A stretch of DNA of 64,000 bases from Octopus bimaculoides (lineage: Eukaryota). The notes below the pieces were generated by a model. That model made no database searches and was not told where the DNA came from. It saw nothing but the letters and a program-made list of their open reading frames with translations. The position numbers and the translations under genes were made by a program. Location of the stretch: the NCBI RefSeq assembly GCF_001194135.2, contig NC_068981.1:197011072-197075071 (forward strand), given 5' to 3'. Below are positions 11,101-63,094 of this stretch, in pieces; within the stretch, counting starts at the first letter, position 1; the number at the start of each line of letters is the position of its first letter.

Positions 11101-13850
11101 ATTCTTATTCTAACAGCTACACTCTCAGAGCATCCACCTCCACTGCTGACCTGGTCACCCAGATAATGGAAGCTATCAACTACTTGGCATTTGATGAAGT
11201 ATATTTTCTGTACATTCCTAGTGTCTATTGTACCTGTGCATCTGCCACACACAAAGACTAATTTCTCTGTTAACCTTCCTTTGATATTGCTGCACCTCTT
11301 ATGTGTCCATAGCTTACGCCAGGTACATCTTATGGAATTTCTACCTATGCCTTTTCTACACATCAAGCAGGGCCATCTATCAGAAGGGATTTGTGAGCTG
11401 TCCACTTTCTTACTTACTAAGACTTTGGTTTTTGCTAAATTAACTCTAAGGCTTTTGGATTCTTGACCTTGCCTCCACACCTGAAATTTCTTCTCCAGTT
11501 CTGGTAGTGATTCAGCCATAAGAGCAAGGTCATCAGTATAGAGGAGCTCCCAGGGGCATCCTGTCTTAAATTTCTGTTATTGCCTGGAGGACTATGATGA
11601 ACAAGAGGGGGTCTGAGGACTGATCCTTGGTAAATCTCCTCGCTCAATACTAGTCCCCCACCCTCAGTTGAAGAGGAGGAGGGTGGGGGAGTTCTTGGCT
11701 TGTAAGTTAGTTGGAGAATTCACTGCTGCCAGTGCCACTAAAACAACAACACCTCATTCACTTGTTACACCCATGAAGTGTAACATCCATCAGGTTACAG
11801 TCAATTTACTCAAGCATATGACCTCTGATAGCCTGAAGGCCACTCACTCACACACGCCTGTAACATCTTGCAAATGAGAGCCACATAAAACATCCACCCA
11901 CCCCCCAATCTTTACAATGCCCCATGCTTTTGCTAAGAAATCCATTGAAGGAATCTGTTACTTACTGGTTTATGAGGACAGTTAATAAATCTGGATATCC
12001 ATCAAGGTTGTAATCACCAGCACGCAGAGTAATTGGAGGTTTGACAAGTTTGTCAGCATTTTCAGGAAGAACAAACCTCCATTGTGCCTGAGCAAAGTCA
12101 ACAGACAGATTGTGCCACTGTACCAAAGATAGAAAAAAAAATTAGGCAAATATTAAACAATTTATCATAATATTACTAATTGTACATCATTTAATTAATG
12201 ATTTCTAACACAGGCTACACATAAGGATGGGGAGGAGGTGTTGATTTAATGAACCTCAGTATATGACTGGTACACACTTGATTCAACACCAGAAATATGA
12301 TAAAAATCAACCTCTACAGAATGAAGTCAAACAAGGGATGTAATAACACAACATATTTCATTCATTGCTCCACCGATTTTATCAAAATCATCATCATCGT
12401 TTAAAGTCCGCCTTCCATGCTGGCATGGGTGGAACAGTTTAACAGGAGCCGGCCAGGCAGAAAGAAGCCTGCACCAGACTTCTGTGTTTGTTTTGGCAGG
12501 ATTTTTACAGCTGGATGCCCTTCCTAACACCAACAACCCCAGCAGAGTAGACCGAGTGCTTATTACATGGCACAAGCACAGGCGGGGTCAGTTTTGACAG
12601 GGTTTTTACAGCTGTATTCCCTTCCTAACGCCAACCACTTTACAATGTGGACTGGATGTTTTTTAAGTGACACCTGCACTCACAGGGTCACCAAGTACTT
12701 TGCAAAACAAAAAAGAATTTAAATAGTAACGTTATCTGCATTTATTGCATGGGTTGGCTGGTTCCACAGAATCCGACAGGCAAATGGGTTGTGTATTGCC
12801 TGTCTGCTTGCATTGATCGCATGGTTGATAGATCTTTGAAGGGAGACAACTCAAACATTTTTACAAAGGGAGACTACCAAACGAAAATGTTATTTCCCTT
12901 CTACTAACAAAAAAAAAAAATAGAAGTGCATCTTGGAATTAGAACCTTCATCCGGTCAAGCTTTAACAGACGCCATTCCAGTCTTGCGTTAATTGAGCAA
13001 AGTCTTCAAGGAGACATCCAATGTCTCCGGTCAGTCGATCTCCATACGCTGTGTTCGGACAACCTGCTTCAGTATGTCCATGAGTTGGCAGGCGGCGGCG
13101 TGGTTGGAGAACAAACTACTTACCACACAGCCATGCCTGGTTGAATCGTTCGAGGGCCAGGAAAAAACACCTGGCAGTGNNNNNNNNNNNNNNNNNNNNN
13201 NNNNNNNNNNNNNNNNNNNNNNNNNNNNNNNNNNNNNNNNNNNNNNNNNNNNNNNNNNNNNNNNNNNNNNNNNNNNNNNNNNNNNNNNNNNNNNNNNNNN
13301 NNNNNNNNNNNNNNNNNNNNNNNNNNNNNNNNNNNNNNNNNNNNNNNNNNNNNNNNNNNNNNNNNNNNNNNNNNNNNNNNNNNNNNNNNNNNNNNNNNNN
13401 NNNNNNNNNNNNNNNNNNNNNNNNNNNNNNNNNNNNNNNNNNNNNNNNNNNNNNNNNNNNNNNNNNNNNNNNNNNNNNNNNNNNNNNNNNNNNNNNNNNN
13501 NNNNNNNNNNNNNNNNNNNNNNNNNNNNNNNNNNNNNNNNNAGAGTTAATATAATCAACTAACCCTCATTCCTCTCTCCAGAATTGCTGGCCTTGTGCCA
13601 AAATTTGAAATTATCATCATTATTATTGTGAAGGCAGTGAGCTGGCTGAACCGTTAGTACGTCAGGCAAAATGCATTGTGGCATTTCAACAGTCTTTACA
13701 TTCTGAGTTCAAGTTCTGCCAAGGTCGACTTTGCCTTTCATCCTTTTGAGGTCAATAAATTAAGTACCAGTTGTGTACTGAGGTCAATCTAACCAAGTGC
13801 CCCCCCCCCACCTTCCCAAAAATTTCAGGCCTTGTGCCTAGAGTAGAAAA

Positions 13851-20400: not shown

Positions 20401-23400
20401 TTACAACAACCATACCACTAGCAACTTCAGCAACCATACCATCCATACTTTCACCAGTAATGAAGGAACTTGTACATGTCACCTAACCCCTACCCCATAT
20501 CATTACACCACCCCCACCCTGTCCATTTCACGTTCCACAAAGTCCCTACCAGCTTTCCCTCCTCTATGAAATCCCTAACTAATCCATACCATCTATTTTC
20601 TTATGACAACTAAACACATTATCTCTAGCAATACTAATTAACAGTGCTAATTAACCCATTAACTGCCAAATTATGTTAATTCATATTTTGGGGCTTTGCC
20701 AGGTGTCTTGGGAGTTAAAATAATATATAGTATTTAAATTTTCTTCATTTGTGAATTATTTTGGAAATTATGATAAATTTTTCGAAAAGTCCCAAATGGG
20801 GATCGCTGAAAAAAAAAGCATATTTATCCTTTCCTATTCAATTGCAATAATAAACATTTTAGTTTTTTTGAAACTATAATATCAAATGTGAATGTGTATG
20901 AAATATCAATGAATGATATAAATGGGAAATGCAAAAATAAACAAAAACGTTTTCAAAACCGTTAATATTTTTGTAGTTCAAAAATTGCGATTTATGACAT
21001 AAAATGTCCTCCAAGATTAGCCAGAGCTAATAATGACAAACTTTGATTACTAAATATTGTTAAACATCCCTCTGCAAATGCAACAATGTCCATAAGCAAT
21101 TCCCTTTAAATACAGCAAGCAACTGGCAGTGAGACTGTTCTTAGCAGGTCCCCAAATGGGGCCCATGGCAGACAAGGGGTTAACAACAGTAATTACATAC
21201 CAGCACAGAAATCATAATTGAGGTCCACAAAAGCACTGGACTGTGGTTTTTTCAATGGATCAAAAGTGGTCTGGGTGTTGTTCTTGGGGAAATCTACCAT
21301 CTTCATGATTCTTTGAGAGCTGCACAGTATAAAAGAAAAAAGATACAGATCGTAAAAACAAGCACTACACAGATCAACTGTCAACCGGAAGGTTGACTGC
21401 TGACCCCAAATTTAAGGACACAAATGCAGTAAGGCTGTTTTGTCCTCCAACAATTCTACCAGATCACCACCCAATTTGGTTGTTACAGAAGAGATGTAAG
21501 AATTATTATGACAATGTTCCATTTTAGTAGTAGTAGTAGTATTGAGACGTGTGCTGTGGCAGTGCGTTGCTACATCTACCATTTCTTGACAATAACCACT
21601 CAGGCAATAACCCTCCAAACCATAGGGCTGTTTGAGTAGTCGTTGCTGATGAGGGTTTAATGAGGTTGGAATGTAATCCCTACCTCAATGTCTTTTAGTT
21701 GTAAATAATGTACATAATTCGTCATCTCTTAAATATAGAACTGTATGGATGTTAAATGATGATTTTTAAGGGGCTTCTCAAAGAAATAGTTTCTGGCACT
21801 GCAGACAAGACTCGGATGTGAGTCTCGTCTTCAATGATGTGGTCTTCACTCGGGTATGTTGAGTCTACATAACCTGACATACCTTCACCAAGGTATGTTG
21901 CGTTATAAAAGGCGTCTTCGCTAAGATATGTTGAGTCTCCATCAGAGGTTCTCACAGATTCTTAAACTCAGTATGTAGAAGTGGGTGTCACAGAAAATTA
22001 CCATTTTTAAATTTCACGAGAGATATTCAGCAACAGTACTTTGGAATAAAGATTGTTTGCCAACATAACATGGCAGTCCTGCTTTAGGACAAATGTTGCT
22101 GACAAATGTTGCCCCAGGAGACATCGTCTCCAACTGGCTATACGACACGATCTGAGTCCTTATATTTTCGAACAAGAGAATAAGGATACAGATCGTGTGG
22201 TACAGCCAGCTGGAGACGATGTCTCCTGGGGCAAAATTACAGCAACATTCATCCTAAACCAGGAGTGCCATGCTATGTTGGCAAACAATCTTTACTACAT
22301 GGGTGTAACAGGTTGTCATATGGATGGTGCTGTGTGGGGGATTTCACAAGATAGAAGGAATGACAACATATTTCCACAAATACAAACTCTCACCCCACCC
22401 CCACTACCCCCATCTTCAGTATGTTTTGGAAGAAATCCATTCAAAAAGGAGTGACAAAGGATGAAGGAGAGAAAAAAAGAGTAACAAATACCTTCCAAAC
22501 CAAAATTTCCTTTTCCCATCAGAATTTTCACCAAATAAATCTGAAACCATGTCAGCATTGGCACTGAAAGGGAAGAGAGAATTGGAAAATGACAAAGTAT
22601 TATTAAAGTCCAAAGATAGAATTAAAGGAAAATATCGATGGGATGATAGAGCTGAAAGTCTGCTAGAACTGTCCAAGACATGATGGTACAATATGGCTCT
22701 GATTTGGTGGATATCCAACATATGATGATGATGCAGTTGTTTGAGCAAGTGAATTATTTACCCCTGAACAGGTAAGGGTATAGGCACCTGTACCTTTAAT
22801 GTAATTCTCAGGCAGAATTGACAGGACATGGTGTGTGACAAGGTATGCCTTTTGAAATACAGGTACAATCCAATTAGATGGGCTTCTTCCCAGTTTCCTC
22901 TGAACGTAATGGGTCGACCTGAAACTGTGAAACAAAATGACATTTGTCCAAGATGGCATGCAATGAGATTGAACCTGGGACCCCAGGACTGCTAAGCAAA
23001 CTTCTAGACCATACAGCCAGTCAGGCAGCACTAGCATCAACCACACTCGAATGGTGCTTTTTACGTGCCACTGGCATGGGAGTCAGTCAGGCGGCACTAG
23101 CAACAATCACACTCGAATGATGCTTTTTACATGCCACCAGCACAGGAGCCAGTTAGACGACACTGGCAATGATCATGCTCGAATGGTGCATAGGACCAGT
23201 CAGCCAGCACTGGACAGTAAGTCATGATGATGATGATGATGACACAGAGTTCAAATCCCAGGCAGCTGATAAAAGTACCAGTGGTGTAATTTGAACAATT
23301 CNNNNNNNNNNACAAGCCTCTTTTATGCCATCATCTTCCAAATGAGGTTCTTTGGAGAACTGTGAAATGTGGTTCTTAAAGAAGATATTGAGGAGAGCAT

Positions 23401-27356: not shown

Positions 27357-28760
27357 CACACACACACACATCAATATTAATCACTCTCAAAGCGGTGACT
27401 TGGCAGAATCATAAACACACCGAACTAAATTCTTAGAGGCATTTAATCCATCTTTACGTTGTGGGTTCAAATTTCATCGAGGTCGACTTTGCTTTTCGTC
27501 CATCCAGGGTTAACAAAATATGTACCAGCTGAACAATGGGGGTCGATGTAATCGAGTGACCACCTCCCCTGAAACTGCGAGCCTTGTGCCAAAATGTGAA
27601 ACCAACATTACTCACTGACTTATACACACCACATCTACCCATCAAATCTGTCTCATTTCTCTCCACATCCACACGTTGTTTATACAGACCACTTCTACAG
27701 ACCATGTTATTGTAACCTACATCTACACACTGTCCATATATATCCACTCCACATCTATACATTGTGTTTATCATATACAGCTTACATCTACACACGCGTC
27801 GTCAATACATTGTCTATTTTATACACTCCACATCTACATATAGTGTATATCATTAAATCACAACACCCCAATATAAATGAGATGAAAGGTCTTTCTATTC
27901 GACATTACTGAACGTGTGTGTGTTTGTGTGTGTATATGCATATTCGAATGTGTGCTTAGATTTGGTTTAATTACTGGCAACTGAAGTCAAGTTTAACATA
28001 CTTTAGTTCTGAGACACACCCACAACTAACATTTAACCATTTTCTTATCGGGCAACTTTGTATTACGACGCTCGTTCACATGCTTAGACACGTCCCTTTG
28101 TTGTACTAAAACCACAGCAATGGCGTTCCAGGCGTGGTCGTCCCGTCTTTTTTGTATATCTAGGAGTATATTGTTCGATGTGACATCCATTTTTTTTTAG
28201 GGCAGTAGTGCATGATTTGTGGGAATTATTTGTATTGGGAAAAGAGAGGGGGGTGAGTTTATTGCCTCGTCACACAAGTCACCTGCCTCTGAACAATAAA
28301 GGTTTGGCGGAAGTCAAACTTGTAAAAGTTTCAAGTTATTTAATTCGATGCACTTATTAGAGCAGAACTGAAACTCAAGAGACACTGAGAAAGTGACATT
28401 AAAATATTGTAAGTAGACGAAATAACATTTCTAAAAGAGAGAGATTCAAGACAAAATGATATGAGAAGAAGTTCTGGACTTACCTCCGTCCGTCAAAAGA
28501 AATATGTCTGTATGTTTATCAGCATTAAAGTCACCGAAGGCAGACACAACACCCCTGTCGTTGCTGTTCACTAGAATGGCACTGCTAATATCTGAAAACT
28601 CTGTCAATTCACAAGAAACCAAGTTGATATGAAAGAAGAAGACAAGAACGGCCAAGAGGAAGACGTACAGCTGTTTCCTGACATTGTTGTGTCTGGTCGT
28701 CGTTTTTAACTCCACGCACGGCCGCCGTCTTTTCATTCTGGCTTCTGAATACATATTCAT
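2061..28760 (-). CDS. ITFG1: ITFG1 / T-cell immunomodulatory protein (TIP, LINKIN), multi-exon gene span, 3' end outside window
   Basis: Spliced translation gives a signal peptide, FG-GAP motifs ([55 protein letters not shown]) and the C-terminal conserved block [20 protein letters not shown]...[16 protein letters not shown], matching recalled human ITFG1; 14 exons with GT-AG boundaries. Confidence 0.95.
2366..2680 (+). mobile_element. tRNA-derived SINE, family C
   Basis: A box GGCTGTGTGG, B box GGTTCAGTCCC, internal (TG)n, tail ...GAAACAAGTAAAAGAATAA; further copies near 25470-25690, 32500-32690, 33838-34229, 41300-41650, 47910-48410, 48600-48890, 60185-60408 and 62090-62300. Confidence 0.8.
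4061..4182 (-). CDS. ITFG1: ITFG1 internal exon
   Basis: (A)[40 protein letters not shown]; phase 1-0, donor GTTAGT. Confidence 0.94.
4330..4900 (-). mobile_element. Tx1/L1-clade ORF2 C-terminus and 3' UTR remnant
   Basis: ORF 4620-5036 contains VKECVWWTR...[26 protein letters not shown], an L1/Tx1 C-terminal pattern; ends next to a (TATC)n tract. Confidence 0.6.
5285..5586 (+). mobile_element. tRNA-derived SINE, family B (cut by gap)
   Basis: GGAGGCGCAATGGCCGAGTGGTTAGG A box and GTTTCGATTCC B box followed by a non-tRNA body over 200 nt long. Confidence 0.8.
5961..5982 (-). CDS. ITFG1: ITFG1 internal exon, truncated by assembly gap
   Basis: ccgcag|PYGTNQP(G), compare recalled human PFGVNQPG; runs into N gap 5587-5960. 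Confidence 0.85.
6721..6758 (-). CDS. ITFG1: ITFG1 small internal exon (38 nt)
   Basis: (V)[12 protein letters not shown]; tttcag acceptor, GTAAGT donor, phase 1-0. Confidence 0.88.
7943..8048 (-). CDS. ITFG1: ITFG1 internal exon
   Basis: GVLDVFITS...[14 protein letters not shown]; phase 0-1, donor GTAAGT. Confidence 0.92.
9232..9805. mobile_element. Non-autonomous DNA transposon (MITE) with 37-bp TIRs, 8-bp TSD and central telomeric palindrome
   Basis: TIR GGATCTTTTTTAAAACGGGGGCCACA(G/T)TTTTCATTAA at 9232-9268 and 9769-9805 (1 mismatch); TSD GAATGTTT at 9224-9231 and 9806-9813. Confidence 0.9.
9821..9968 (-). CDS. ITFG1: ITFG1 internal exon
   Basis: [12 protein letters not shown]...RTF...[12 protein letters not shown]; phase 2-0, donor GTAAGT. 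Confidence 0.92.
10690..11680 (-). mobile_element. RTE-clade LINE remnant (RT motifs to C-terminus), frameshifted
   Basis: [40 protein letters not shown] in adjacent frames; the C-terminal region matches the other RTE copies in the window. Confidence 0.85.
11966..12117 (-). CDS. ITFG1: ITFG1 internal exon
   Basis: WHNLSVDF...[24 protein letters not shown]; phase 0-2, donor GTAAGT; not in the ORF track, translated by hand. Confidence 0.93.
13630..14830 (+). mobile_element. Head-to-tail cluster of five family A tRNA-derived SINEs
   Basis: Repeated GAGCTGGCAGAA...GAGTTCAAATT...GACTTTGCCTTTCATCCTTT...GGGTCGATAAA..AAGTACCAG units, most separated by (ATT)n; more copies near 3781-4000, 16075-16262, 23590-23820, 27390-27605, 34995-35475, 41878-42065 and 50683-51115. 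Confidence 0.85.
14865..15400 (+). mobile_element. 5'-truncated RTE LINE 3' end with (GAT)n tail
   Basis: ...[13 protein letters not shown]-terminal codons, then the 3' UTR GGAAGGGCATCCAGC...CAACCCATGC...GATGATGAT; this 3' UTR is the most abundant repeat in the window (dozens of copies on both strands). Confidence 0.85.
15705..15793 (-). CDS. ITFG1: ITFG1 internal exon
   Basis: (D)[29 protein letters not shown]; phase 1-0, donor GTAATG. Confidence 0.92.
16812..17590 (-). mobile_element. 5'-truncated RTE LINE (C-terminus plus 3' UTR)
   Basis: ORF 17245-17448 [41 protein letters not shown], followed by the 3' UTR and (GAT)n tail. Confidence 0.88.
17666..17747 (-). CDS. ITFG1: ITFG1 internal exon
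   Basis: [27 protein letters not shown]; phase 0-1, donor GTAAGT. Confidence 0.9.
19338..19396 (-). CDS. ITFG1: ITFG1 internal exon
   Basis: (D)[19 protein letters not shown]; ttgtag acceptor, GTAAGC donor, phase 1-0. Confidence 0.88.
20655..21179. mobile_element. piggyBac-like MITE (TTAA target)
   Basis: TTAA|CCCATTAACTGCCA ... TGGCAGACAAGGGG|TTAA (11/14 TIR match); AT-rich interior. Confidence 0.55.
21201..21319 (-). CDS. ITFG1: ITFG1 internal exon
   Basis: [10 protein letters not shown]...[19 protein letters not shown]; phase 2-1, donor GTATGT. Confidence 0.9.
22047..22294. repeat. Long fold-back inverted repeat (about 120-bp arms, almost no spacer)
   Basis: TAAAGATTGTTTGCCAACAT...CCAGGAGACATCGTCTCCA / TGGAGACGATGTCTCCTGG...ATGTTGGCAAACAATCTTTA; about 15 mismatches or indels counted by hand. 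Confidence 0.92.
22492..22563 (-). CDS. ITFG1: ITFG1 internal exon
   Basis: [23 protein letters not shown]; ttcag acceptor, GTATTT donor, phase 2-2. Confidence 0.88.
23302..23311. other. 10-N assembly gap (probably unsized) inside an ITFG1 intron
   Basis: N run; other gaps at 1837-1928, 5587-5960, 13180-13541, 48150-48262 and 61360-62034. Confidence 0.99.
24672..24905 (-). CDS. ITFG1: ITFG1 coding exon 2
   Basis: cag|GG AAA...; [10 protein letters not shown]...[19 protein letters not shown]...[11 protein letters not shown]; phase 1-1, donor GTAATT. Confidence 0.92.
26520..26665 (+). mobile_element. Degraded CR1/L2-clade LINE C-terminal remnant
   Basis: Translates approximately [28 protein letters not shown], resembling the CR1 motif HLEY..VWNP...LE.VQRRA. 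Confidence 0.5.
28484..28760 (-). CDS. ITFG1: ITFG1 coding exon 1 (signal peptide, first FG-GAP)
   Basis: MNMYSE...[20 protein letters not shown]...[19 protein letters not shown]; donor GTAAGT at 28483, phase 1; the true start ATG among several is uncertain. Confidence 0.9.
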
Positions 28761-29045
28761 TTCCTAACAATCTACAACACAAGGAAATATTTCTCTATAT
28801 CACTACCTATATATATCAATATTCGATTCTAAATATTATAGCAACAGCCTTAACTTGTTACACATGTCCCGACCAAACAAGAAGTGACTGCCGTAAACAC
28901 AAACGTATGACGACGTCTTAAAAAAATACGAAACTCACTTAATATAAAAACCATTAAAATATCATCGAAATTTATATTTTCGGTTTTAAAAATAACTAAT
29001 TATTTTATTTTTGTAAATTTGATACTTAAAACACGTAATATCAAG
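28761..29045. promoter_or_regulatory. Compact divergent (bidirectional) promoter and 5' UTR region shared by ITFG1 and PHKB
   Basis: Only 285 nt separate the two oppositely oriented start codons; the stretch is free of repeats in an otherwise repeat-saturated window; TATAAAA at 28943-28949 and TGACG at 28908-28912 are present but weak evidence. Confidence 0.75.
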
Positions 29046-29169
29046 ATGAGTCTTTATAAAATGGAAAATTGCGACGATCGTCTGACACCGAGGGATATCA
29101 CAATGGCGGAGATTAAGAGAGAAAATTATGAAGCAACCGTTAAAAAACTGGATACTTATTATTTTAGAC
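29046..29169 (+). CDS. PHKB: PHKB coding exon 1
   Basis: MSLYKME...[10 protein letters not shown] (compare human LWDKLDHYYRI); donor GTAAGT, phase 1; alternative ATG at 29061. Confidence 0.85.
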
Positions 29170-31341
29170 GTAAGTATTTCATTGAATCTTATCTATTCAT
29201 GACTCCTTTATCAATTGCCTGTGTAAATAGAGCGATTCAATATCTTGTTGTTTTTGTATTCACCTACTTTTCCCACCTGTGTCACACAAATGTCGTTCAG
29301 TTACCTTGACCTTCATATTTTCATGTCCTCGATTAAACACAGCTGTTTCTTGTTATTCTACACATTGCTGCACATTATTATGTACACTCTACATTATTAT
29401 ATATACACTCTACATTATTATATGCTCTACACTATCATACATTCTACGCATAGGCTTTTATACACACCACGAATGTTGGATTGTTGTTGTTCATGATGAT
29501 GCTGTTTAGCCCTAGGTAAGTCCTGATCATAAGCAAAGGCGTTCTAATCATGACCATCCCGTCTCTTAGACGGGATATTTCAAATAACATTATTTAACAT
29601 GGCCTTCCTTCTTTTAAGAGAGCAAGGTGTGATTTGAGACAGATTTAGCTGTTATTTGTAGCAGGTCGAACAACTGCGTAGAGGCTCCATCGTCATGATG
29701 ATGATGATGCTGATGATGATGATGATGCTTTGTGTTGTTTAGCCCCAGATCATCCTTGATCCAGCTAACCTCCCTTCAAAGACGTTCCAGCCATAACCAT
29801 TTCGTCTTATTTTCAAACATAACGCATCCGTAAGACAACATTACCCGAAATGTTTTACTTTTTAATAAAGGCGATTTGACTGCTATTTCTAGGAGATTGA
29901 GCAATAACATAACGTCTCCCCTTAGGTTGGCCTTGATCGAACAGACTTTCGACTAAAGACAATCCAACAGTGACCTTCATACAGCATGTCCATCAGCATG
30001 ACATGAAGGAGATTTAACTGTTGTTTCCAGCAGACTGAGCGACCACATAGGTGGATCGATGGCCAACAGGAATGAAATCAACAATTGACAAGAAGAACAC
30101 AACAATGGTGATTCTATTTGGTCTTTTCTTACAAACGTTTATTGTTTTGAAATGGTTTATTGTCACCTTTCACATTTTCACAAATGGTATGGTCGGTGGG
30201 GGTGGTCGTGGTGGGGCATATGTTAGTGTGTGTGTGTGTGTGTGTGTGTCATGCGCGCAAGTGTGTGTGTGTGCGTATGTGTTTACGTGCTTGTGTGTTT
30301 ATGTGCGTGTGTGTGTGTGTGTCATGCGCGCACGTGTGTTTGCTTGTTTATGTAACAGGAAAGACAAAAGTCTGTGCACTCGAATTTAAGTGTGAGAAAA
30401 TATAGGATACTGTATTTTAAGCGTGTATAAGGAAAACCCCTCATTTTAGGGGGGGGGCTTAAAATTTGGGGAAAAAGGTTTTGTAAGGGATTATAATACT
30501 ATCCATGTATAAGAAACTCCCATGTTTTTTAACCTAATCTTTGACAAAAATGGGTTCCTTATACATGTTAAAATACGGTAGGTAAGCAGACAGGTAAATA
30601 GATAGGTAGACAGACAGACAGACAGGTAGGTAGGTAGATAGATAGATAGATAGATACAGTTCTATATTTAAGAGATGAGGAATTATGTACATTATTTACA
30701 TTTGATGGATATTTGTCCTCATCTTGCTTGTTGTTAACGTTTCGGCTGATATACCCTCCAGCTTTCTTCAAGTGTCTTGGGGAAATTTCGAACCTGGGTT
30801 CTCATTCCTAAGGAATTCTTCGTTGTTGTTGTTATTATTATTATTATTGTCCATGGGCATATGGTGTGGTGGTTAAGAGCGCGGGCTACTAACCCCAAGA
30901 TTCCGAGTTCGATTCCAAGCAATGAACTGAACACTAATAATAATGATAATAACATCGAAAAATACCTTAGGAATGAGAACCCAGGACACCTGAAGAAGGC
31001 TGGAGGGTATATCAGCCAAAACGTTGTGTTAACAACAAACAAGATGAGGGCAAGTATCCATCAAATGTAAATAATGTAGATAGATAGATAGATAGATAGA
31101 TAGACAGGTAGTTAGATAGTTAGGTATATAGACAGGTAGGTAGGCAGACAGGTAGATAGATAGATGTTCATCATCGCCGTCATCAGCATGAACATCCAAC
31201 TTCCATGCTGGTATGTGATGGACAGTCTGACAGGATCCAACAAACCAGAAGACTGCATTGAATTCTTATGTCTGCTTTGGTAGGGTTTCTATGGCCAGAT
31301 GCCCTTTCTAACACCAACCACTCTACAAAATATACTGGGTG

Positions 31342-35800: not shown

Positions 35801-38800
35801 CTCCATACATCATCAATAACTTTCTACTTTTTCTGTCAAGTTACTTGGGGGCAATATGTCACAATGTGTGCCACTGACTCATTCCAAGTTGCACAGACTC
35901 TACATTTTTCTGACACCTCCTCTCCACATATATTTTTTCTCAAATTGCTTGCTTTTATTGCATTATCTTGAGTTGCTACAATTAGGCTCACTTTTTTCAA
36001 TTGCCCCTTTCATAACCAAGCCCAGAATTTTGTCCCACCTACATCTTCAATGGCTCTCCAAAACTGTCCCTGCACAGGTTTCTCTTCGATCTGCCTGACA
36101 TGCTCTCTTTCTATTTCATTCTTTTCTCCTGTCACGTGCTTTCTCACCTGTTCTCTCTTAACTGGTTTTAGTAGTTTTTCTCTGCTGCTCTCTAAATACT
36201 CTACTAGACTTCTTCTTTCCATCTGTACACATTCTTTTACTGCTATTAAGCCTCTACCCACCCTGGTCTCTCTTCAAGAACAGCCAGTATTTATCTCATT
36301 TATGCAGTCCCCATCCATTGTTGTTTTGCTGCCTAGATAGTTCAATTCGTCAACATTTGCGATTGGTTTGTTATTGAAAGTCACATGGTCAGCCTCTGTT
36401 ATGTTTTTACAAAGAGTGGACGTTTTCTTCTCGTTCCTTTTGAAACCCATCATCAATTCTCAGCAGGAGCACCGAAAAATACGATTTTACCAAAGCAACA
36501 TACTTAGGATCCTCCTCTCTGGTTCTGAATGTTGGAAAACAACCAAAAGTATTGAAAAGAAATTGGAGGTTTTTTCAAAATAAATGTTTACGAAAAGTTT
36601 GAAGGTTTTTACAGGCCGAATATGATCTCGAATAACGAACTACACACCATGGCTAACGTGAAACCAGTAAGAGAAACTATTGAAGTAAGGAGATGGAACT
36701 GGCTGGGTCGAGTTTGTTGCTATAAACTGAACTCAATTGTCAGGATTGTTTGGCAATGAGTTCCACAAAATAAAAGACGTGGTCGACCAAAGGAAACATG
36801 GCAGAGAACAATAACAAAAGATCTTAAAAGCAGAAGGGTTAACAATGGAACAAGCTGTCAAGGACCCTTTCAGTGTTAGAAGGTGGGATGATCTTGCTGT
36901 CGCCTCAAGTGCCACAAGGCACAATGAGAACCGAATGAATGTACCCTGATCTGTGTGTCCAACACATGCCAGTGTGGAAAACGGATGTTAAAGAATGATG
37001 ATGATGATGATGATATGCGTATATTTGTCCTTGTCCTTGTCTTGGTATTGTTGTCTGATAGTTGTGTTTCTCACTGTCATACAAACCATGTCATTCCCAA
37101 TTTTCTACAAGAAATTACTTGGTCCTGGGGGAAATATTACCTTGCTCAGAAGCAAGGGTGGATTGGCAACAGGAAGGGCATCCAGCTGTAGAAAATCTTC
37201 CTCAATAAACTCCATCCAGTCTATGCAAGATTGGAAAAGTGGACCTTAACAAACTTTGCCAGATCGGATTGGAGCCTAGTGTAGTCATCTGGTTCACCAG
37301 TCCTCAGTCAAGCCGTCCAACCCATGCCAGCATGGAAAGCAGACGTTAAGCGATGATGATTATATATCTGGTAATGAATTAATTGAACCTCAGATTTTTT
37401 TTATGTCCTCTGCTAAAAATATGGTCAGTGAAAGTTGAAACAATTTCTATGTCAATCCAACATGGAAGCTACTAAATGGTTGATTGACTTGCTAGAAATA
37501 GCAACCGAATCTTCCTTAAATCATAATCTTCAATCGCAATCTGGTAAAAGAACGTATTGGATGATGGATTCCAAATTGTGTGCAGGGAAAATACAGTATG
37601 GCTAAGCCTTGTACTCCATTGCTAGATAATCCCTCCCTCACAAGAATGATTTGGCAGATAAACGCTAACAATTTCAATGTCTCCCTGACGACTCGTTTTT
37701 TTCTGTTTTCGTCTCCTTAATGACTTATTTACCTCTCTCTCTCTTTCTCGCCTCGTAGTGAAATGTGAGATTTCCAGATACCAAAGCCTTTCTCTTGGTC
37801 TCTACCCGGAATGTGGTACACCTGATCCTTACAAAGCATCCAACCATGGCCACATCCGAGACAGTATTTATTGTGCGGCAGCAACATGGTGTCTCTCACA
37901 GGCATACAGGTACGTCTTTCCCACTCTAATTCTGAATAGCCACTGACCTCTCATATTAGCAGCACTGACTCCAGATCTAGGATGTTATGCAGCAGCCATG
38001 TACATAGACATCCTGGTGACCATCACCCTGATAGACAACCTTACTGCATCCCTCCCACTCACACTACACAGTCTTTCCTTCTCAGAACTAACAAACTCTC
38101 CACCACACCTGTCCATATCTATTCAACTCTTCTCCTCCTCCTACTTTTTCTCCTTTTGCACCTTCTTCTTCTCCTCCTCCTCCTCTTCTCTTTTCACCTC
38201 TTTATTCTTCACCTCCTCCTTCTTTATCCTCCTCCTCCTTCTCCTTCTCCACATCCTCATTCTTTTCCTCCTCTTCTTCCTTCTCCTCCTCTTCCTTGTC
38301 CTCTTCCTTCTTCTCCTCCTTCTGCCCCTCCTCCTCTTCCTTCGTCTTCTCCTTCTCCTCCTCCCCCTCCTCTTCCTTCTCTTCCTTCTCCTCCTTCTGC
38401 TCCTCCTCTTTCTGCTCCTCCTACCTGTTCTCTTCTTCTCTTCCTCCTCCTCCTCTTCCTTTTTCTCCTTCTCCCTGTACTACAACACCACTCTGGAACC
38501 TCTTCCCTCTCCCCACCACTCTCCAATAGTCATCAAATCCCATCCTTACCAATCTGTCAACATCTGCAAAGGTTATGGATCCACACCTTTCTTCTTCATT
38601 AAAATAATAGCATTGCACAAGGCCATACACATTTTTATCAACCCCAGTACATGACTGGTACTTTACTTTCATCTACGTCAACTTCATCCTGGCAGAATAG
38701 GAGTAATAGAGAAAGAAATGTGAATTAATATTACTTTTGTTGAAAGGAAAGGAGAGAAAACCAGTTTAATTAGCAGTGTTAATAGAAGTGGGACCAAGTC

Positions 38801-39267: not shown

Positions 39268-42200
39268 AGTCGATGTTATTGTTGCTGCTGTTGCTGTTAC
39301 CCTTGTTAATTTTCTTCTTACAGACACATCGATGATGACCAGGGGCGGTGCCAAGAGTTGGCACATAATGCCATCAAAACCATGCGTGGTGTTCTCTACT
39401 GTTGGATGCACCAAAACACGATAACACAGAACGTAAGAATTCTCTGGCCTTGTTGGCATTTGGAATGTTCACTAGTTTCCCACCAACACAACTGTTGACC
39501 TAGTTGGGTGGTGGGTAAGGTTATAGTCTTCTTATTACCTCATGGTCATAGGCTCAAATCTTACTGCAGCCATTGTATCGTGGCCCTTGAGCAAGACAGT
39601 CAAGTCTTGCTTTTGTTGACATGAAACAGGCTCCTTGCCACCAACACCACCATCATCTACCTCTGCTCTACCTCCCATCCACCACCATCACATGTCCAGG
39701 CCGTCACCTCCCATCCACCACCATCACATGTCCAGGCCGTCACCTCCCATCCACCACCATCACCTATCTTTATACAACAGCTTCGTGATAGTTTCCACTT
39801 TACCACTTTTCAACCAAATGATTGACCTTCTACTCGGTCACTTAACCTGTAAGAAACAACAGCTAAACCTTCCACTTATCAGATGCTATTATGCTAAAAG
39901 CAAAAGATGCATTGGTTGATATATATATACATCCAGCATCCTAATGAGAAAGGATTTTTGGATGCTGGGCCTCACTGAGGAAATGACAAGGGGCCAGGAG
40001 AGGTGGGAATTTGCTGTACCTGATAAGACAGGTCAAGCTAAGTAAAACCAGTGTCTTCCCTAAATACAGGTTTGTCCTTTACAGGTGCTGGGGCCACATG
40101 AAATGCACTTGTGCTGGTGCTGTGTAAAAAGCATGCAGCACACTCTGTAAAATTGGTTGGCGTTAGGAATCAGAAGGACATCCGACCATAGAAACCATGC
40201 CACAACAGACAATTGGAGTCTGGGCAGGCTCCCTAGCGGGCCAGCTTCTGTCAAACCGTCCAACCCATGCCAGCAAAGAAAACGGATTATCATCATCGTT
40301 TAATATCTGATTTCCATGCTGGCATGGGTTGGACGGTTTTACTGGAGACTGGCAAGCCAGGAGGCTGCACCAGGCTCCAATCTGATCTGGTTATGTTTCT
40401 ACAGCTGGATGCCCTTTCTAATGCCAACCACTTCGAGAGTGTAGTGGGTGCTTTTATGTGCCACCAGCACAGAGGCGAGAGGAGCTGCCATCGGCCACAT
40501 TCGGATGGTGCTTTTTACGTGCTACTGGCACGGGGCTCACAACTACAGTTTCCATTTGATTTGCTGTTGATGTTGCATTTTCTTGGATTTCCTCAGAATC
40601 TTGAAATTTGTTCCTTTCAAGTGGGATTTGAATTCTTAGAAAGATTCTTGGCTGTAATAACCTTCAAACCATTTCTTTTTCCCACACATGCGAACGCACA
40701 CACACACACATTTTCTCTTGCCATGGTCACTGATGGAACCTCTGTGGTGTGGTGAGATGACCACACTCTTATGAACAACAGAAGTGAGCCAAAACATTAT
40801 CACTTAGTGTGCATGCAAGACGGAGTGCAAGGTCAGTTTGTGCCAAGCAGCTTCACTCTGCATACTATAACTCTGTTACCATAGCAACAGCCCCTACACT
40901 TTTGAGTCGGACCTCATAGATGTGTGTGCATGCACGTGGGTGTGTGAGTGTTTGTTTGCATTTCTTTGTCTTGACGTAGCATGGTAGTCGTAAACGAGTG
41001 TCACTGTCATGCGAGCAGTGTCATTTACTTGCAGTATTCTGCAAAAACATGTCTGGCCCTGTCGAAACATTACCTTGTATGGAAGCCGATGAAGCTTAAT
41101 GACAGGAAGACTATCCAACCATTAGAAGATCTGCATCAGTAAACTTCCATCCAACCCATGCCAACATGTGAAAGAAGACATTAAACCAATGATGAAGACC
41201 ATTCAGCTGCTGTTTCTAGCGGGTCAAGCAGTTGTATAGAGGCTCGCTTATGTTATTATGTTAATTTTGTCTCATCCCTAATTGTTATTCTTTTGTTCTT
41301 TTACTTGTTTCAAATCGACCCCAGGGCTTATTATTTTTTGTAAGCCTAGTACTCATTCTATCATTCTCTTTTGCCAAACCACTAAGTTATGGGAATGTAA
41401 ACACACCAACATTGGTTGTCAAGTGATGGTGGGGGGACAAACGTAGACACACACACAAATATACATATATATATATATAAACACACACACGACAGGCTTC
41501 TTTCAGTTTCCATTTACCAAGTCCACTCACAAGGCTTTGATCGGCCCAAAGCTATAGTAGAAGGCACTTGCTTGAGGTGCCATGCAGTGGGACTGAACTT
41601 GGAACCATGTGGTTGGGAAGCAAGCTTCTTACCACACAGCCACGCTGCTCCTATATCATCATCATCATCATCATCATCATTTTCTGTTTGAGTGCAGTTC
41701 CTAATTATCGTTCATGTTCTCTCCATTTATAACAGATCGAAAAATTCAAACATGACCAAAATCCCATCAATGCTCTCCACAGTGTGTTCGATATCGTCAC
41801 TGGTGACCCTGTCTTCAAGAAGGACGAATCAGGGCACTTACAGGTCAGTGGTCTCTTCTTTACCAATACTCTTCATAAGGCGGCAAGCTGGTAGAAACGT
41901 TAGCATGTTGGGCGAAATGCTCAGTGGTGTTTCGTCTGCTGTTATGTTTCTGAGTTCAATTTCCACCAAGGTCGACTTTGCCATTCATCTTTTCGAGGAT
42001 CAATGTAATCAACTTAATCCCTATTTGTTCCCTCTGTTTAGCCTCGTGTGGGCAATAAAGAAATAAATATTCTTCATTTGGCGTCATAAATTGTGCTCCC
42101 ATCAGAGACAGAGTAGTACATGGAATATGTGGCACTCATGCCTTTCCCAAGAGAATTTAGTGGAATCAGTGAAGGGCAAACCATAATTTAAGTTCTTTTA

Positions 42201-45200
42201 TTGCTTAAAGATCTGAGGTTTGTGAGGAGGGAGGTGGTCGATTACATTCATCTCATTTCCTCCCTCTTCAGTGTTTAACTGATGGGATGAAGGTCAATAC
42301 TGACCACCAGAGGAATAGATCTTGGACCATAAGGGTCCATACTGCAAATATCTGAGACATTTAACTGCTTCTCATGACTAAGGGCAGCAAAAGGTGTTGC
42401 TTTTTAGCCGGTGGTCAGCCCTGACCCAACAGACCTATGGTTAAAGGTGTTCAGGCTGTGACCATTCCATTCTTTTATTCAGGCATCGTACATCTAGGAC
42501 TACATGACACAGAGTGACTTGAAAGAGATTTGGATGCTAATTCTAGCAGGTCAAACAACTACACAGGCACTGTTATTGCTTGGGCTGTTGTTGTTGTTGT
42601 TTTACCCCAGGTCAGCTCTCATGCAGAAGGCATATAATCAGAGACATTCCAGCTATGGCAATCTAGTATATTTTTATTCAGACATTGTGTCTTTTTTTTT
42701 TTATATATATAACAGTGAGGTGTGATTTGGTGGTGATTAATTTGCCATTTCTAACATATCCGGACATATACACTATCCAACAGAACCTTTTGGTATAGTT
42801 TGGTGGAGATTTGGTTGTCATTTCTAGCATATAAGGTCATCCTGTAAATATCTGAATCTAACAGAAACGTTTTCCTTTCTCTTCAGCTTGATGTTATTGG
42901 TCTCTACCTCATCTTCCTTGTCCAGATGATAACCTCTGGCCTCCAGGTAAGATAGCATTCAGATGGAATTTCTTTTAATATTTATTTTTATTTTTTGTCA
43001 GGAGGGAAAGGGACATGTGTATGGCTTTTTACTTTTGGAAGGGAGGCAGAGAGTTGAGGGGGTGGGGATTTCGTCAAACTAGAAACCCGACCCAAATACT
43101 TGCAACAGTGAGGACTCTGTGAGAGGGCGACAACCATCCCCATCTGTCTCACTGGGCTTTAATTTACTACAAAGCCATGTCTTCCTCCTCTCTGATCAAG
43201 TCATCATCATCATCGTTATCATCATCATCGTCATCATCATCATTTAACATCCATCAGCCATGCTGCCATGGGTTTGATGGTTTGACAGGATCAAACAAGC
43301 TGCAGAGTTGCACCAAGTTGCAGTGTCATCTTTGGAATGGTTTCTACAGTTGGATGCCCTTCCAAATGCCAACCACGTTATAGAGTTCACTGGGTGGTTC
43401 TTTTTTTTGTCTTTTTTCCCATGCCAACAGCACTGGTGAGGTCACTGAATAACTTAGAAGGCAAAAAGGGAATTGGAGGAAAGGAGGAAAAAGAAAGACT
43501 AAATATGGAGAGTGTTTGATAGGTGGGGGGGGGGCTTTGTGCTAGGTCTACCTTTCGAAATATAAAATAAACAAAATAAATTTCTCATCATTGTAATCAT
43601 TTAATCATTTTCCATGCTGGAATGGTTTGGATGGTTTGACAGGGACTGCACCAGGTTCCATTGTCTGTTTTGGCAGAGTTTCTATGGTTGGGTTTCCTCT
43701 CTGATACCAACCACTTCACAGAGTGTACTGGGTGCTTTTTACGTGGCACCATCACCAGTGCTTTTTACGTGGCTCTGGTAGAAAAAAAAAAAACCCAGAT
43801 AAACTGATAAAAAAATTCTTGTCTCCTTTTCAGGTGATATTTTCATCTGACGAAGTGAACTTTGTACAGAATCTCGTGTTCTACGTTGAGCGTGCCTATC
43901 GCACTCCTGACTATGGCATGTGGAAGAGAGGAACGAAATATAACAATGGTAGTACGGAAATACATGCAAGGTAAGTGCTTTCTGTTCAGCTGATCTCTTC
44001 TTCATTTTCTCATTTCATTCATCATCATCATCATTGTTTAACATTCTCTTTCCCATGCTTGCATGGCTCAGAAGGAATCTGTTGAGGTAGATTTTCTATA
44101 GCCAGATGCCCTCCCTGTTGCTGACCCTCATCTCTGTTTCCAAGCAACAAAATAGTTCCCCATGGCCAAACATTTTCATCATATAAGGGAGTTACGAGGA
44201 CGATTGATAGCAAAAATAAAATGGAAAAAGTATGTGTCAATATATGGTGTGTGTGATTATTTTGTGGTTACTGAAGTGTGTCTGTCTCGAGCAAGATTCA
44301 AAGCAGCTAATCGAAGCAGCTAGATTGTGTAGGTGTATTTTTACCCACTCCGTTGTTTACACATGGCCAGTTATACGTCGCTATGTGTAGAGCAACGGAC
44401 ACCAGTTATTTGAAAATTTGTGTCGAGCAAACAGAAAATATTGTCTACAAAGAAGCTTTGTAATCATATTGATATTATCGAAAGGAATATGATTCATAAT
44501 TGAAATAAGGAAATTTGTCAACTTTGAATATATAAGTGTATAAACAAGCGTAAAATAGTGTAAACAACTAGAATAAAAGTATATCTAAATAACATTTGTT
44601 TCTTAATACTTTTTATGTAGTGGTCAAAAGAAACTCTGGCTTTCATTAGGAGTGGTCCACATAACCATTCATGATACAGAGGCTGGGAGCCTATTTCAGT
44701 TCAGGGGTGAATCGTCATCACATGTCACTTAGTCACAGACACATGTCATATAGCCGCAATAGAATGCTGTATCACCAATAATAATGTGATTTCTCCAAGA
44801 CATCTCCCACTAATCTATCAAATCCATTTACACATTTCTCAATACATACAGCTGTTATGACTTCCCTCCCACATTTTATGCCTCCATTGTAGATGGGTAG
44901 ATTTGCCAGGATATACAATAGACTTATTTTCAGCTTCCATCAACTAAATCCACACACAGGGTTTTGGTTGACTTTGGGCAATAGGAGAAGACACTTGCCC
45001 AAGGTGCTGTGCAGTGAGACTGAACTCAAAACTACATGGTTCTTAACCACACAGCCATACCTGCATCTATGCTACACCTGCACCAACAACCATGCCCTAT
45101 TTAACCCTTTCATTACCAACCCGGCTGAAACCAGTTCTGGCTCTGTAGTACAAATGTCTTGTTTACATAAGTTTTGAATTAAAATCTTCCACCAAACCTT

Positions 45201-48200
45201 AGTCACAATTTATGTTCCTAACACTAGCTTAATGATAACAAAGTTATTTTACTAAATTCTTTGTTATATTTAAAATTAATTGAAAGAAACACAGAACATC
45301 TCAAAATAAATAGAGTAACAAAAGGATTAAGTGGATTAAGCCTTAAACCATTTATTATCCAACGTCTCTATGTTCTTCCGTTTCATTCCTTCTAGTTCTA
45401 TCGGTTTCTGTAAAGCTGCTTTAGAATCCATAAGTGGAGTGAACCTGTTTGGAGAATATGGTGCTTCCTGGTCTGTCATTTATATTGACATAGATGCCCA
45501 CAATCGGAATCGAACTATTTTTGAAACCATCCTACCTCGAGAGTCAAATTCCAAGGTTTGTAAAAAGTTTCTTCTTTGATGTACTAATTCTCATATCTTT
45601 CTTTACCATTTACTCTTTCATTATCATCATCATGTCTGTTTTCCATGCTGGCATGGGTTGGACGGTTTGACTGAGGTCTGGAGAGCCAGTGGCTGCACCA
45701 GGTTCCAATCTGATCTGGCAAGGTTTCTACAGTTGGATGCCCTTCTTAATGCCAACCACTCCAAGAGTGTAGTGGGTGCTTTTTACATGCCACCAGCACA
45801 AGAGCCAGTCAGTGGGTACTAGCATCAATCACATTTGGATAGTGCTTTTTACATGCCACCGGCACGGGGGCCAGTCAGGGGGTACTGGCATCGGCCACAT
45901 TTGGATGGTGCATCTTACATGCCACTGGCATGGGAGCCAATCAGGCAGGCCTGGCATCGATCACATTCAGATGATGCTTTTTACATTCATTAAATTAGTT
46001 TCAACGGTTTTTTTTTTCCAAGAAATTTGTTAATAATTTTCATATACATGCACATATACATACATGGATGTATACAAGCATGTGTGTATGTATACATCCA
46101 TCCATATATATATATATATACATACACACATGCATGTATACATACATCATCATCATCATCATCATCATCATCCTTTAACGTCCGTTTTTCATGCTGGCAT
46201 GGGTTGGACGGTTTGACAAGAGCTGGCTCCAATTGTCTGTTATGAGATGGTTTCCATGACTGGATGACCTTCCTAATGCCAACCATTTTGCAAAGTGTTC
46301 TTGGTGCCACATAGTTATACATCAATCAACTATTATTCTAATGTCTCCTTTTCCATGCCCATTCCACCATTACCATCCACCTGTTATTGCCCACCCATTG
46401 ATTAGCTAAACACAAACCCCTAAACTAACAAAATACAATGTTCTAACCACAATAATGTGTCCCTTTCAGCCAATTTCCATAAAAATCTCTTTCCCACCAA
46501 TTTGCTCTGCATTTCCTTGACTCTTCTTTCTCTTCTCCTCCTCATTTCATCTTCTCCTCTCCTCCACCTTTTATTCCTCCTTCTCCATGACCATCATCAG
46601 CATCAGTCACCTTACAGACATCATCATCATCATCATCAGATTTTCTCCAGCTGGATGCTCTTCCTGTCACCAACCCTCCTCTGTTTCTAAGCAAGGATGT
46701 ATTTCTCCATGGCTGGAGATGTTTCCACAGAAGTTCAGAAATGAACAACACTGCTTATGTAATGGTGATATATATCACAACAAGAAAATGCCAAAACACA
46801 CACACACACACACACATCCATTAGTATGTAAAACTACGAGAAAAAATACTCAGCACAAATTTTAGAGATCATTTCATTTAAAGCTGATAAGTCAGTTCAT
46901 TGCGTTGCCACTCAGAGTTTTCTCAGTATGTCATCTCTCAGGATCACAAAACTATGGTCTTCATCTTTTTTTTTTTTCCTTTCCATAGCCTGAACTGACA
47001 CCCATGCCAGTGACGTGTAAAAAGCACCTTTAGAGCATTGGGCCTCTTAGTGGCAAAGTGGCTGACGCCGGTGGCACATGAAGAGCTTCTTTCGAGTGTT
47101 GGGTCTCACGGTAGCAATGGCCAAGACCTTTGGTATTATGTCGTGCCTGAGAAGAAGTCCCATCAAGCCAAGTAAAATTGCAGTCATGGCAGATATCAGT
47201 GTCACACAATGGGCTTCTTTCAGTTTCCACCCACCAAACCCACTCACAAGGCTTTGGTCAGCTGAAGGTTGTGGTAGAAGCACGTAAAAGCACCCCTTAC
47301 ACTCTCAGGGTGGTTGCCATTAGGAAGGGCATCCAGCCGTAGAAAACCATGCCAAATCAGACTGGAGTCTGGTGCAGCCTTCCAGCTTACCAGCCCTGGT
47401 CAAATCATCCAACCCATGCCAGCATGACCAATGGACGTTAAATGATGATGATGATGAGGAGGATGAAATGTTGCTGATGTGTAAATGTCTATCTTATTTT
47501 TGTTTACAGAATACTGATGCCTCCCTTCTTCCAGCAATTAGCTGGCCAGCATTTGGCATCCACGAGACATACCTGCGTGAACGAGCAATCAGCAAAGTTC
47601 TGCGCAAACTCAGTGGCAGCTACGGATTAAAACGCTACCTCCGTGACGGCTATAAGACTGTTCTAGAAGATGAAACTCGTAAACACTACGTGCCAGCAGA
47701 GATTAAGGTTAGCAGTCTTTTATGTTGTTTTGTTGTTGTTCAGCCTCAGACTAACCCTGATTAAAGCGACTAATGACTAAAGACATTCAAGTTGTGACCA
47801 TCACTCATTTTGTGTATCAAAGTCATTTTCTAATGATTCTTTTCTACTGTAAATGTGATTTGCAGGAATCTGGCTGCTATTTCTAGCTGGCTAAGGGACT
47901 GCACATATTCTTTTGCTCTCTTATTTGTTTCAGTCATTGGACTGCGGCCATGCTGGAGCACCGGCTTTAGTCGGACAAATCGACCCCAGGACTTATTCTT
48001 TGTAAGCCTAGTACTTCTATCGGAACCTTTTGCTGAACCGCTAAGTTACGGGGATGTAAACACACCAGCATCAGTTGCCAATCGATGGTGGAGGGACAAA
48101 CACAGACACACAAACATACGCACACACACACACACATGTATTCATATATNNNNNNNNNNNNNNNNNNNNNNNNNNNNNNNNNNNNNNNNNNNNNNNNNNN

Positions 48201-54700: not shown

Positions 54701-55876
54701 ATGATAGTGCATATTCTGAGGTTGATTCGCTGTTATTTCTAGCTGATCAAGCAACCACATAAAGACCTCCTTCTTTGCTCAAGATCTAAACCAGCCATCA
54801 ATGTAGTGATCTTCTATATACAATACCTTTGATACTTTCTTTACAGGAGAGGATTTAATCCATATCAATGAACTGGACCCTATTCGTAGGTATCTCCCTG
54901 CACCAGAAAGACCACGGTTCAGTTCTCGATACAGTGCATTCCAGGTATGTATATTTTGGGTCATCTTTATCACAGCAGTGAACAGATCAAATTTCACTCT
55001 CGATGTGTTTGTATATCCATTAACTGTTGTATTTGTGTATCCATTAACTGTTGTGTTTATATGTCTGTTCACTGTTGTGTTTCTATATCTGTTAACTATT
55101 GTATCTATGTGTCTGTTAACTTGTGTTTATGCATATGTTAACTGTTGCGCTTATGTGTTTGTTAACTGTTGTGTTTATGCATGTGTTAATTGTTGCGCTT
55201 ATGTGTCTGTTAACTGTTGTGTTTACGCGTCTGTTAACTGGTGTGTTTATGCATCTGTTAACTGTTGTGCTTATGCATATGTTAACTGTTGTGCTTATCC
55301 ATCTGTTAATTGTTGATGTGTTTAATTCACAATTAGGGCATCAACCCTTTATTTGTATAAAAGTTCCCTCAGATTACATTGTTTTGTTTTTTTTTTTCTT
55401 TCTTTCCAAACAAGTTTTCTTAAGTTTCTCTTGATTTTTGTGTTTTCTTTGTACAGGGCACCCCTGATGACCTCGTCATTCAAATGGTACTCATCTCTGA
55501 AAGTGCCGAACTTCAAAAGCTGTTGGGAACCTATGGTATTGAAACCCAAACTCCAAGACAGGTGGAACCTATCCAGATTTGGTCACCAAAAGAATTAACA
55601 AAGGCTTATGAGTACCTTGGTCAGAACAAGAAGCTCCAAATATCAGGAAGGCCGTCTCGTCCATTTGGCGTACTTAGTACTTCAAAGGTACTCCTCTTTC
55701 TCTTAATTCCCTTGTTTCTTTTTATTTATACCCTTATTATAATGCACTGTGTCAGCAGAATGGGTTCTCCTATTTTCTCTTGTTTTAACACAAACATCAA
55801 TTTTTTTAAGGATTGTCAGCTGACATTAAAGAGGTTTCTAGAGATTATTATTTACTAAGATATAACTTATTGTTAT

Positions 55877-62841: not shown

Positions 62842-63094
62842 GTAAGGGCTTGCTTCAACGGGAGATGACAACTTTCACACTCTTTCATTTATTTTATTTC
62901 ATTACTAGTCGTTACCCATTGCTATACTGCCGGGTAACGACCCAGTCAAAATGAAATGGATCCTGCAGCAAAAGCCGACTGCAACGATCACATTGATAGG
63001 TTCAACAACAACCTGTTTTTTTTTTTCTTGAAACAAATTTTAATCCTATCTTTCACACACACACACACTCTCTCTCTCTTTCTCTCTCTCTCTT

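Follow-up and report, generated by a model that had tools for sequence, protein, structure and literature searches.

About 600 conserved ancestral microsyntenic pairs (CAMPs) have been described in animals, most of them arranged 5'-5' and these enriched for spacers of less than 1 kb (Irimia et al. 2012). In this study, we analyzed a 64,000-nt stretch of the Octopus bimaculoides genome (contig NC_068981.1; the whole stretch is called the window below), in which ITFG1 on the minus strand and PHKB on the plus strand lie head-to-head with only a short spacer between them. The ITFG1-PHKB pair resembles the CAMPs, in which unrelated genes are kept adjacent in deeply diverged animals, mostly 5'-5' and with spacers of less than 1 kb, a retention attributed to shared cis-regulation (Irimia et al. 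2012). The CAMPs, however, were defined on several deep lineages, whereas ITFG1-PHKB is documented in two only. Another described system is the textbook pair HSPE1-HSPD1 (Hsp10/Hsp60), in which one bidirectional promoter serves both genes across a spacer of less than 1 kb; its 5'-5' orientation has persisted from the unicellular relatives of animals to humans. Its products form one chaperonin machine and are strongly co-expressed, whereas ITFG1 and PHKB have no known functional relation (Gene Ontology [GO] similarity 0), and unlike HSPE1-HSPD1 their linkage is missing in many sampled invertebrates.

The closest counterpart is the same pair in vertebrates. ITFG1-PHKB, listed as TIP-KPBB, is divergent in all nine vertebrates, from zebrafish to human, of the set studied by Davila Lopez et al. 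(2010, Tables S4/S5), with a spacer of 220 nt in human and 1,773 nt on average and a GO similarity score of 0, and it is entry 40 among their tabulated candidate bidirectional promoters. Furthermore, PHKB appears to share a promoter with ITFG1 according to a human study (Fatima et al. 2019, PMC6926186), and a 2025 list of divergently-paired human genes (PMC12672016, supplementary table) includes PHKB-ITFG1. An earlier reading of the window, made without database searches and here called the sequence-only reading, had described the human genes as head-to-head neighbors, and this literature bears it out. Whether the pair is already listed in surveys had been left open; for vertebrates it is on record, as a divergent pair throughout the group and as a candidate bidirectional promoter, but it does not appear in the cephalopod and metazoan block-survey supplements that we searched. 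The names ITFG1 and PHKB are absent from the searched supplements of cephalopod, metazoan-density and sponge microsynteny surveys. The cephalopod survey counts only blocks of three or more genes and would therefore miss a unit of two, as would any block-based survey with such a minimum.

Individual vertebrate loci showed the same layout. In the bird Nyctibius grandis, the ITFG1 coding sequence (612 residues, with a C2_ITFG1 domain) ends at 9776 on the minus strand and the PHKB ATG lies at 10001 on the plus strand, leaving 224 nt from ATG to ATG across a GC-rich island. In the bat Pteropus alecto, the two genes are head-to-head and, by annotation, about 2.8 kb apart. The 5'-5' orientation is thus common to the window, a contig of a related species (L001, see below), the bird and the bat, in addition to the nine surveyed vertebrates including human, and the proposal that the window shares the pair with vertebrates holds.

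Compared with the vertebrate pair (in human on 16q12), the window contains the same orthologs in the same 5'-5' orientation, with matching PHKB intron positions and a spacing of the same order (220 nt in human, 224 nt between the ATGs in the bird, 285 or 291 nt in the window). The vertebrate spacer is a GC-rich CpG island, whereas that of the window has 27% G+C and stands out only by its non-depleted CpG; the two have no common sequence motif beyond chance, and the bird PHKB has one extra intron at its N terminus. Published lists of ITFG1-PHKB are confined to vertebrates. The window extends this known vertebrate bidirectional pair to a protostome and represents no new type of system. We consider it likely that the pair is a conserved divergent unit with one compact, probably unmethylated promoter region of about 300 nt, inherited from an ancestor shared with vertebrates and lost in several lineages.

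Geometry and identity of the two genes

Translation of the divergent region placed the first coding exons, in the reading frames that had been proposed, at the following coordinates:

28484..28760, minus strand: first coding exon of ITFG1 (92 codons plus 1 nt, phase-1 donor GTAAGT)
29046..29169, plus strand: first coding exon of PHKB (41 codons plus 1 nt, phase-1 donor GTAAGT; product ending in KKLDTYYFR)
28761..29045, no strand: intergenic spacer, presumed shared promoter region (285 nt, 27% G+C, 10 CpGs, CpG observed/expected ratio [o/e] 2.19)

The product of ITFG1 exon 1, read from 28760 to 28484, has a basic N terminus followed by a hydrophobic, signal-like stretch. ITFG1 and PHKB, both of housekeeping type, belong to unrelated domain families and are immediate neighbors, with no gene in between. 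The ATG-to-ATG distance is 285 nt, as the sequence-only reading had claimed. Both first exons also occur, again head-to-head, on a 1.8-kb Logan contig from a related species (L001, run SRR11869391), which is about 87% identical to the window in nucleotide sequence. Its PHKB first exon encodes 41 residues in the same position and orientation as in the window, and the protein encoded by the ortholog of ITFG1 exon 1 (P0001/L001) shows 78% identity. L001 has ATT in place of the first in-frame ITFG1 ATG (28760) but keeps the second (28754), which by this comparison probably serves as the start codon. Since ITFG1 of L001 starts at the equivalent of 28754, the conserved spacer measures 291 nt. Between the window and L001, the spacer shows 87% identity, rising to 90-92% over the 120 nt adjacent to PHKB; the exons show 86-90% and the flanking intron segments 75-84%. 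The spacer therefore seems to be at least as constrained as coding sequence and more so than the flanking introns, although a single close relative gives this comparison little weight.

More distant matches came from the ENA assembly ERZ25073280, in which a 53-kb contig (L002) and a 45-kb contig (L017) contain PHKB and ITFG1 exons with 75-79% protein identity to the window. Filed among metagenome assemblies, it appears to represent animal (host) DNA from a more distant relative. The exons of the two genes in this assembly (P0006 and P0007) lie on the different contigs, with 10 kb of flank readable, and are uninformative on adjacency. Reverse-transcriptase open reading frames (ORFs) occur near the ITFG1 and PHKB exons in these contigs.

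Exons of both genes in the window were located by tblastn with human ITFG1 and PHKB probes and joined at GT-AG sites. The probes served for exon location only; the conclusions rest on Pfam, PDB or locus data. For PHKB, the first exon is followed by these plus-strand exons, each found by probe matches and GT-AG joining (here and below, a question mark follows an uncertain coordinate):

37759-37909, 39324-39432, 41736-41843, 42887-42946, plus strand: PHKB exons 2-5
43834-43970, 45396-45555, 47510-47707, 49442-49499, plus strand: PHKB exons 6-9
50399-50476, 53979-54134, 54847-54944, 55457-55687, plus strand: PHKB exons 10-13
57302-57406, 58040-58122, 58240-58330, 59977-60141?, 62566-62844, plus strand: PHKB exons 14-18

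The 18 exons span 29046-62844, and the gene extends past the end of the window. Its C-terminal third, with the region of the KPBB_C domain (PF19292), falls beyond the window (last exon ending at 62844 of 64000). The joined exons match the glucoamylase-like N-terminal domain Glyco_hydro_15 (PF00723, E = 1.5e-45) in Pfam, and in a search of PDB sequences the joined protein of 754 residues scored 802 bits against human PHKB chains compared with 450 bits against PHKA1. PHKA (the alpha subunit), named beforehand as the alternative that would undo the orthology, was ruled out by these scores, and on sequence comparison the plus-strand gene is a true ortholog of PHKB (the beta regulatory subunit of phosphorylase kinase). 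A homolog search with a profile that included human sequence retrieved tetrapod PHKB proteins only.

Intron positions agreed with this identity. The bird exon structure was taken from the N. grandis locus (L003), and intron positions were transferred via protein alignment; 14 of the 17 PHKB introns matched in position and phase at first, and 15 of 17 after a poor GC donor had been replaced by a GTATGT donor at 54945. Exon 1 of the window corresponds to bird exons 1 and 2 combined, and PHKB intron 1 lies at the same residue and phase as bird intron 2. The earlier impression that many exon boundaries fall at equivalent residues was thus borne out for PHKB. Intron conservation of this kind is usual among slowly evolving animal genomes.

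One PHKB exon drew attention on its own. Over the residues of exon 62566-62844 (plus strand), a human PDB chain differs (FTQKFSSSIAPHIT), which suggests that human PHKB has alternative exons at this place. No second, mutually exclusive copy of this exon was found within the 64-kb window.

The ITFG1 model is approximate. After exon 1, tblastn and a splice-site search gave the following coding exons:

24905-24672, 22651-22492?, 21235?-21197, 17841?-17666, minus strand: ITFG1 coding exons following exon 1
15793-15723?, 12117-11966, 9968-9821, 8048-7943, minus strand: ITFG1 coding exons, continued
6758-6717?, 4182-4061?, 2143-2063, minus strand: ITFG1 coding exons, end of the model

ITFG1 thus comprises at least 12 exons from 28760 to 2063, with 11 collinear exon matches and several uncertain internal junctions. 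In Pfam, the joined model matches the family-specific domain C2_ITFG1 (PF23122) with E = 1.4e-18 and 67 bits against a cut-off of 27, as well as FG-GAP repeats of the extracellular part (FG-GAP_3, PF13517, 2.4e-13; PF01839, 7.3e-07). Database fragments P0002-P0006 match its C-terminal exons; one such protein, named TIP, shares 70% identity with the C-terminal exon. By these domain matches, the minus-strand gene is a true ortholog of ITFG1. Intron 1 is in phase 1 in both the window and the bird, at positions within one residue of each other. A search of the window did not reveal the last exon or exons, which encode the transmembrane segment and tail. Also missing from the model is an exon expected between 6717 and 4182 (human residues ~453-486, the start of C2_ITFG1), which may lie within the assembly gap at 5587-5960. 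Further assembly gaps lie at 1837-1928, 13180-13541, 23302-23311, 48150-48262 and 61360-62034.

The shared 5' region

The base composition and repeat content of the window single out the region around the two first exons:

28101..29800, no strand: CpG-non-depleted island spanning both 5' ends (top 900-nt windows, CpG o/e 1.0-1.28)
27614..29586, no strand: longest stretch without intra-window interspersed repeats (1,973 nt by self-BLAST; no other equally long)

The 64-kb stretch as a whole is CpG-depleted (o/e 0.39; median 0.37 and 95th percentile 0.71 for 900-nt segments), and its nine highest-scoring 900-nt segments all lie within 28101-29800, where the ratio reaches 1.28 and measures 1.2-1.28 around the pair. 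Neither the 28 kb upstream nor the 35 kb downstream holds another CpG o/e peak of similar height, which argues against a distant alternative promoter over that range. By self-BLAST, interspersed repeats make up 37% of the window; they account for 27% of ITFG1 intron 1 and for 44% of PHKB intron 1. The spacer itself holds no intra-window repeats, and in this respect the description of a transposon-free spacer between repeat-rich introns stood; the repeat-free spacer alone is unremarkable, however, because the same is true of 32% of the 285-nt segments of the window.

Taken together, the CpG peak and the repeat-free stretch fit one shared, putatively unmethylated promoter island. In a methylation study of octopus, one class of genes has a methylated gene body with an unmethylated transcription start site (TSS) and promoter; together with a fully methylated class, it includes genes highly expressed across tissues. 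By analogy, the CpG-depleted gene bodies with a spared 5' end would match the methylated-body/unmethylated-TSS class. At gathering score, Rfam gave no match in the spacer and no relevant match in the 27.5-30 kb region, and a tandem-repeat scan of the same region revealed nothing relevant.

A secondary CpG o/e peak at 9101-10100 (0.92-0.95, against 0.37 for the median) lies over the ITFG1 exon at 9968-9821; either an internal unmethylated element or simply exon composition may account for it.

Probable promoter sharing and ancestry of the pair

We infer that the promoter region is shared, the TSSs of both genes and their core promoters being confined to, or overlapping in, one interval of a few hundred bases. 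Breaks that part the genes would then have only this short interval in which to occur, and at least one of the promoters would probably be harmed. These two circumstances alone could hold the pair together through extensive reshuffling, with no need for joint work of the proteins. Inheritance of the arrangement from an early bilaterian is the most economical reading; it would be at least as old as the bilaterian stem and would have been lost in several fast-rearranging lineages. The sequence-only reading had proposed a promoter-locked pair kept since the protostome-deuterostome split. The identical layout in vertebrates agrees with this, but the continuity through intermediate lineages that it implies did not emerge, as the 2010 survey lists the pair only for its nine vertebrates.

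Several observations, on the promoter and on the lineages in which the pair occurs, weigh against a shared and inherited promoter unit. Those on the promoter include two sets of elements within the spacer:

28808-28814 and 28943-28949, within the spacer: TATA-like elements, which would fit divergent core promoters
28772..28790, minus strand: candidate 3' splice acceptor tttccttgtgttgtag, 11 nt upstream of the ITFG1 ATG (read from sequence)

The TATA-like matches correspond to chance expectation in sequence of 73% A+T. Motifs common to the spacers of the window and the bird did not exceed chance (one 9-mer compared with ~0.5 expected), and the conservation of the spacer is documented in one close relative only. 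The pyrimidine tract and TAG of the candidate acceptor are kept in L001, which hints at an upstream non-coding ITFG1 exon that, if the acceptor is used, would overlap the PHKB 5' region.

These points bear on the possibility, which we regard as unlikely, that the genes are adjacent without sharing a promoter, having upstream non-coding exons or alternative promoters, and that the 285-nt spacer is not a regulatory unit. Besides the conserved acceptor and the chance-level TATA-like matches, an AG directly before the PHKB ATG would suit it, and the CpG-rich zone of about 1.7 kb, which reaches into both first introns, leaves space for extra 5' exons. The lack of a second comparable CpG peak over 28 kb upstream and 35 kb downstream argues against it, however; an extra first exon would most likely lie inside the same island, so that the genes would overlap head-to-head rather than be unlinked. 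Against separate promoters also speak the annotated starts in vertebrates, with coding sequences 224 nt apart in the bird and genes 220 nt apart in human.

The remaining points concern the distribution of the pair. Davila Lopez et al. (2010) do not list it for Ciona, Brugia, Caenorhabditis elegans, Aedes, Anopheles, Drosophila, Daphnia, Nematostella or Trichoplax, and the deep lineages documented with it are two only, the octopus and the vertebrates. Scanning JGI metagenome contigs with the PHKB N terminus yielded 13 loci, in none of which ITFG1 was detected upstream of PHKB by tblastn at a relaxed E-value or by a search for the FGD-N-D motif. The loci with upstream sequence come from four or five organisms, and in three of these other genes could be named upstream. 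In L008 and L009, where PHKB is the beta subunit (124 compared with 84 bits), a DPH3-like CSL zinc-finger gene stands head-to-head with it and Rpc31 follows beyond; Pescadillo lies upstream of PHKB in L012; and a prefoldin-like gene lies upstream on the same strand in L004 and L014. The 1.5 kb upstream of PHKB in L007 contains no ITFG1-like sequence. All that the metagenome loci show is that the ITFG1-PHKB linkage is not universal.

The absences among the nine surveyed non-vertebrate metazoans and the four or five metagenome organisms would be expected if the head-to-head arrangement had arisen twice, once in the vertebrate stem and once in this invertebrate lineage, an independent juxtaposition that we consider quite improbable. 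By our own estimate, about 10^4 adjacent pairs multiplied by 2.5-5 x 10^-5 give 0.25-0.5 head-to-head pairs shared with human in scrambled genomes, so that one shared pair is not decisive alone. Orientation and spacing agree as well, however, with 220-291 nt in human, bird and window, and a spacing below 300 nt in both genomes lowers the chance expectation by about another tenfold (again our estimate). The non-vertebrates without the pair are mostly heavy scramblers of gene order, which further counts against an independent origin. In addition, hundreds of truly ancestral 5'-5' pairs are documented (Irimia et al. 2012), and the set of Davila Lopez et al. (2010) contained no lophotrochozoan.

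Very unlikely is a pair kept because ITFG1 and PHKB are functionally coupled and need joint expression: conserved divergent pairs of metazoans are, according to the literature, generally enriched for functionally related and co-expressed genes, and conservation in the spacer slightly exceeds that in the flanking introns, but the GO similarity score of 0 in the 2010 tables lends no support to the link between cell adhesion and control of glycogenolysis that the sequence-only reading had drawn, several lineages have the genes apart without obvious consequence, and small target size with promoter overlap would explain the retention without functional coupling. It is just as improbable that the promoter unit, predating the protostome-deuterostome split, was actively maintained for more than 500 million years, despite genome reorganization, for coordinated expression. 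If it were, it would point to an unrecognized functional coupling of ITFG1 with glycogen mobilization.

Knowledge of either protein is unchanged by the finding. If broader sampling confirms it, ITFG1-PHKB would be a clean two-gene addition to the ancestral bilaterian 5'-5' pairs: its spacer measures ~0.2-0.3 kb in a vertebrate as well as in a protostome, and the pair has persisted in a genome type said to have lost much local gene order. Such pairs would offer natural tests of small target size and promoter overlap against protein function in preserving adjacency.

Additional observations on PHKB loci and the window

In L008 (2049-5135) and L009, from an AT-rich eukaryote, the DPH3-like gene lies about 0.9 kb from PHKB-beta as an alternative divergent partner. 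The contigs L004 (49-486 and 910-4314) and L014 (77-463 and 696-1160), from metagenome or metatranscriptome data, are related to each other and have the prefoldin-like ORF directly upstream of PHKB. The PHKB coding sequence is uninterrupted in L004, as is its short N-terminal part in L014, and the two genes may form a polycistronic or operon-like arrangement in a eukaryote.

Within the window, two intronic ORFs on the minus strand look like transposon remnants: one at 52586-53119 (177 residues) with a GIY-YIG-like motif and one at 11055-11519 (154 residues) whose tail is rich in cysteines and resembles a zinc finger. Many ORFs throughout the window contain the same short peptide theme, a sign of one abundant family of interspersed repeats.

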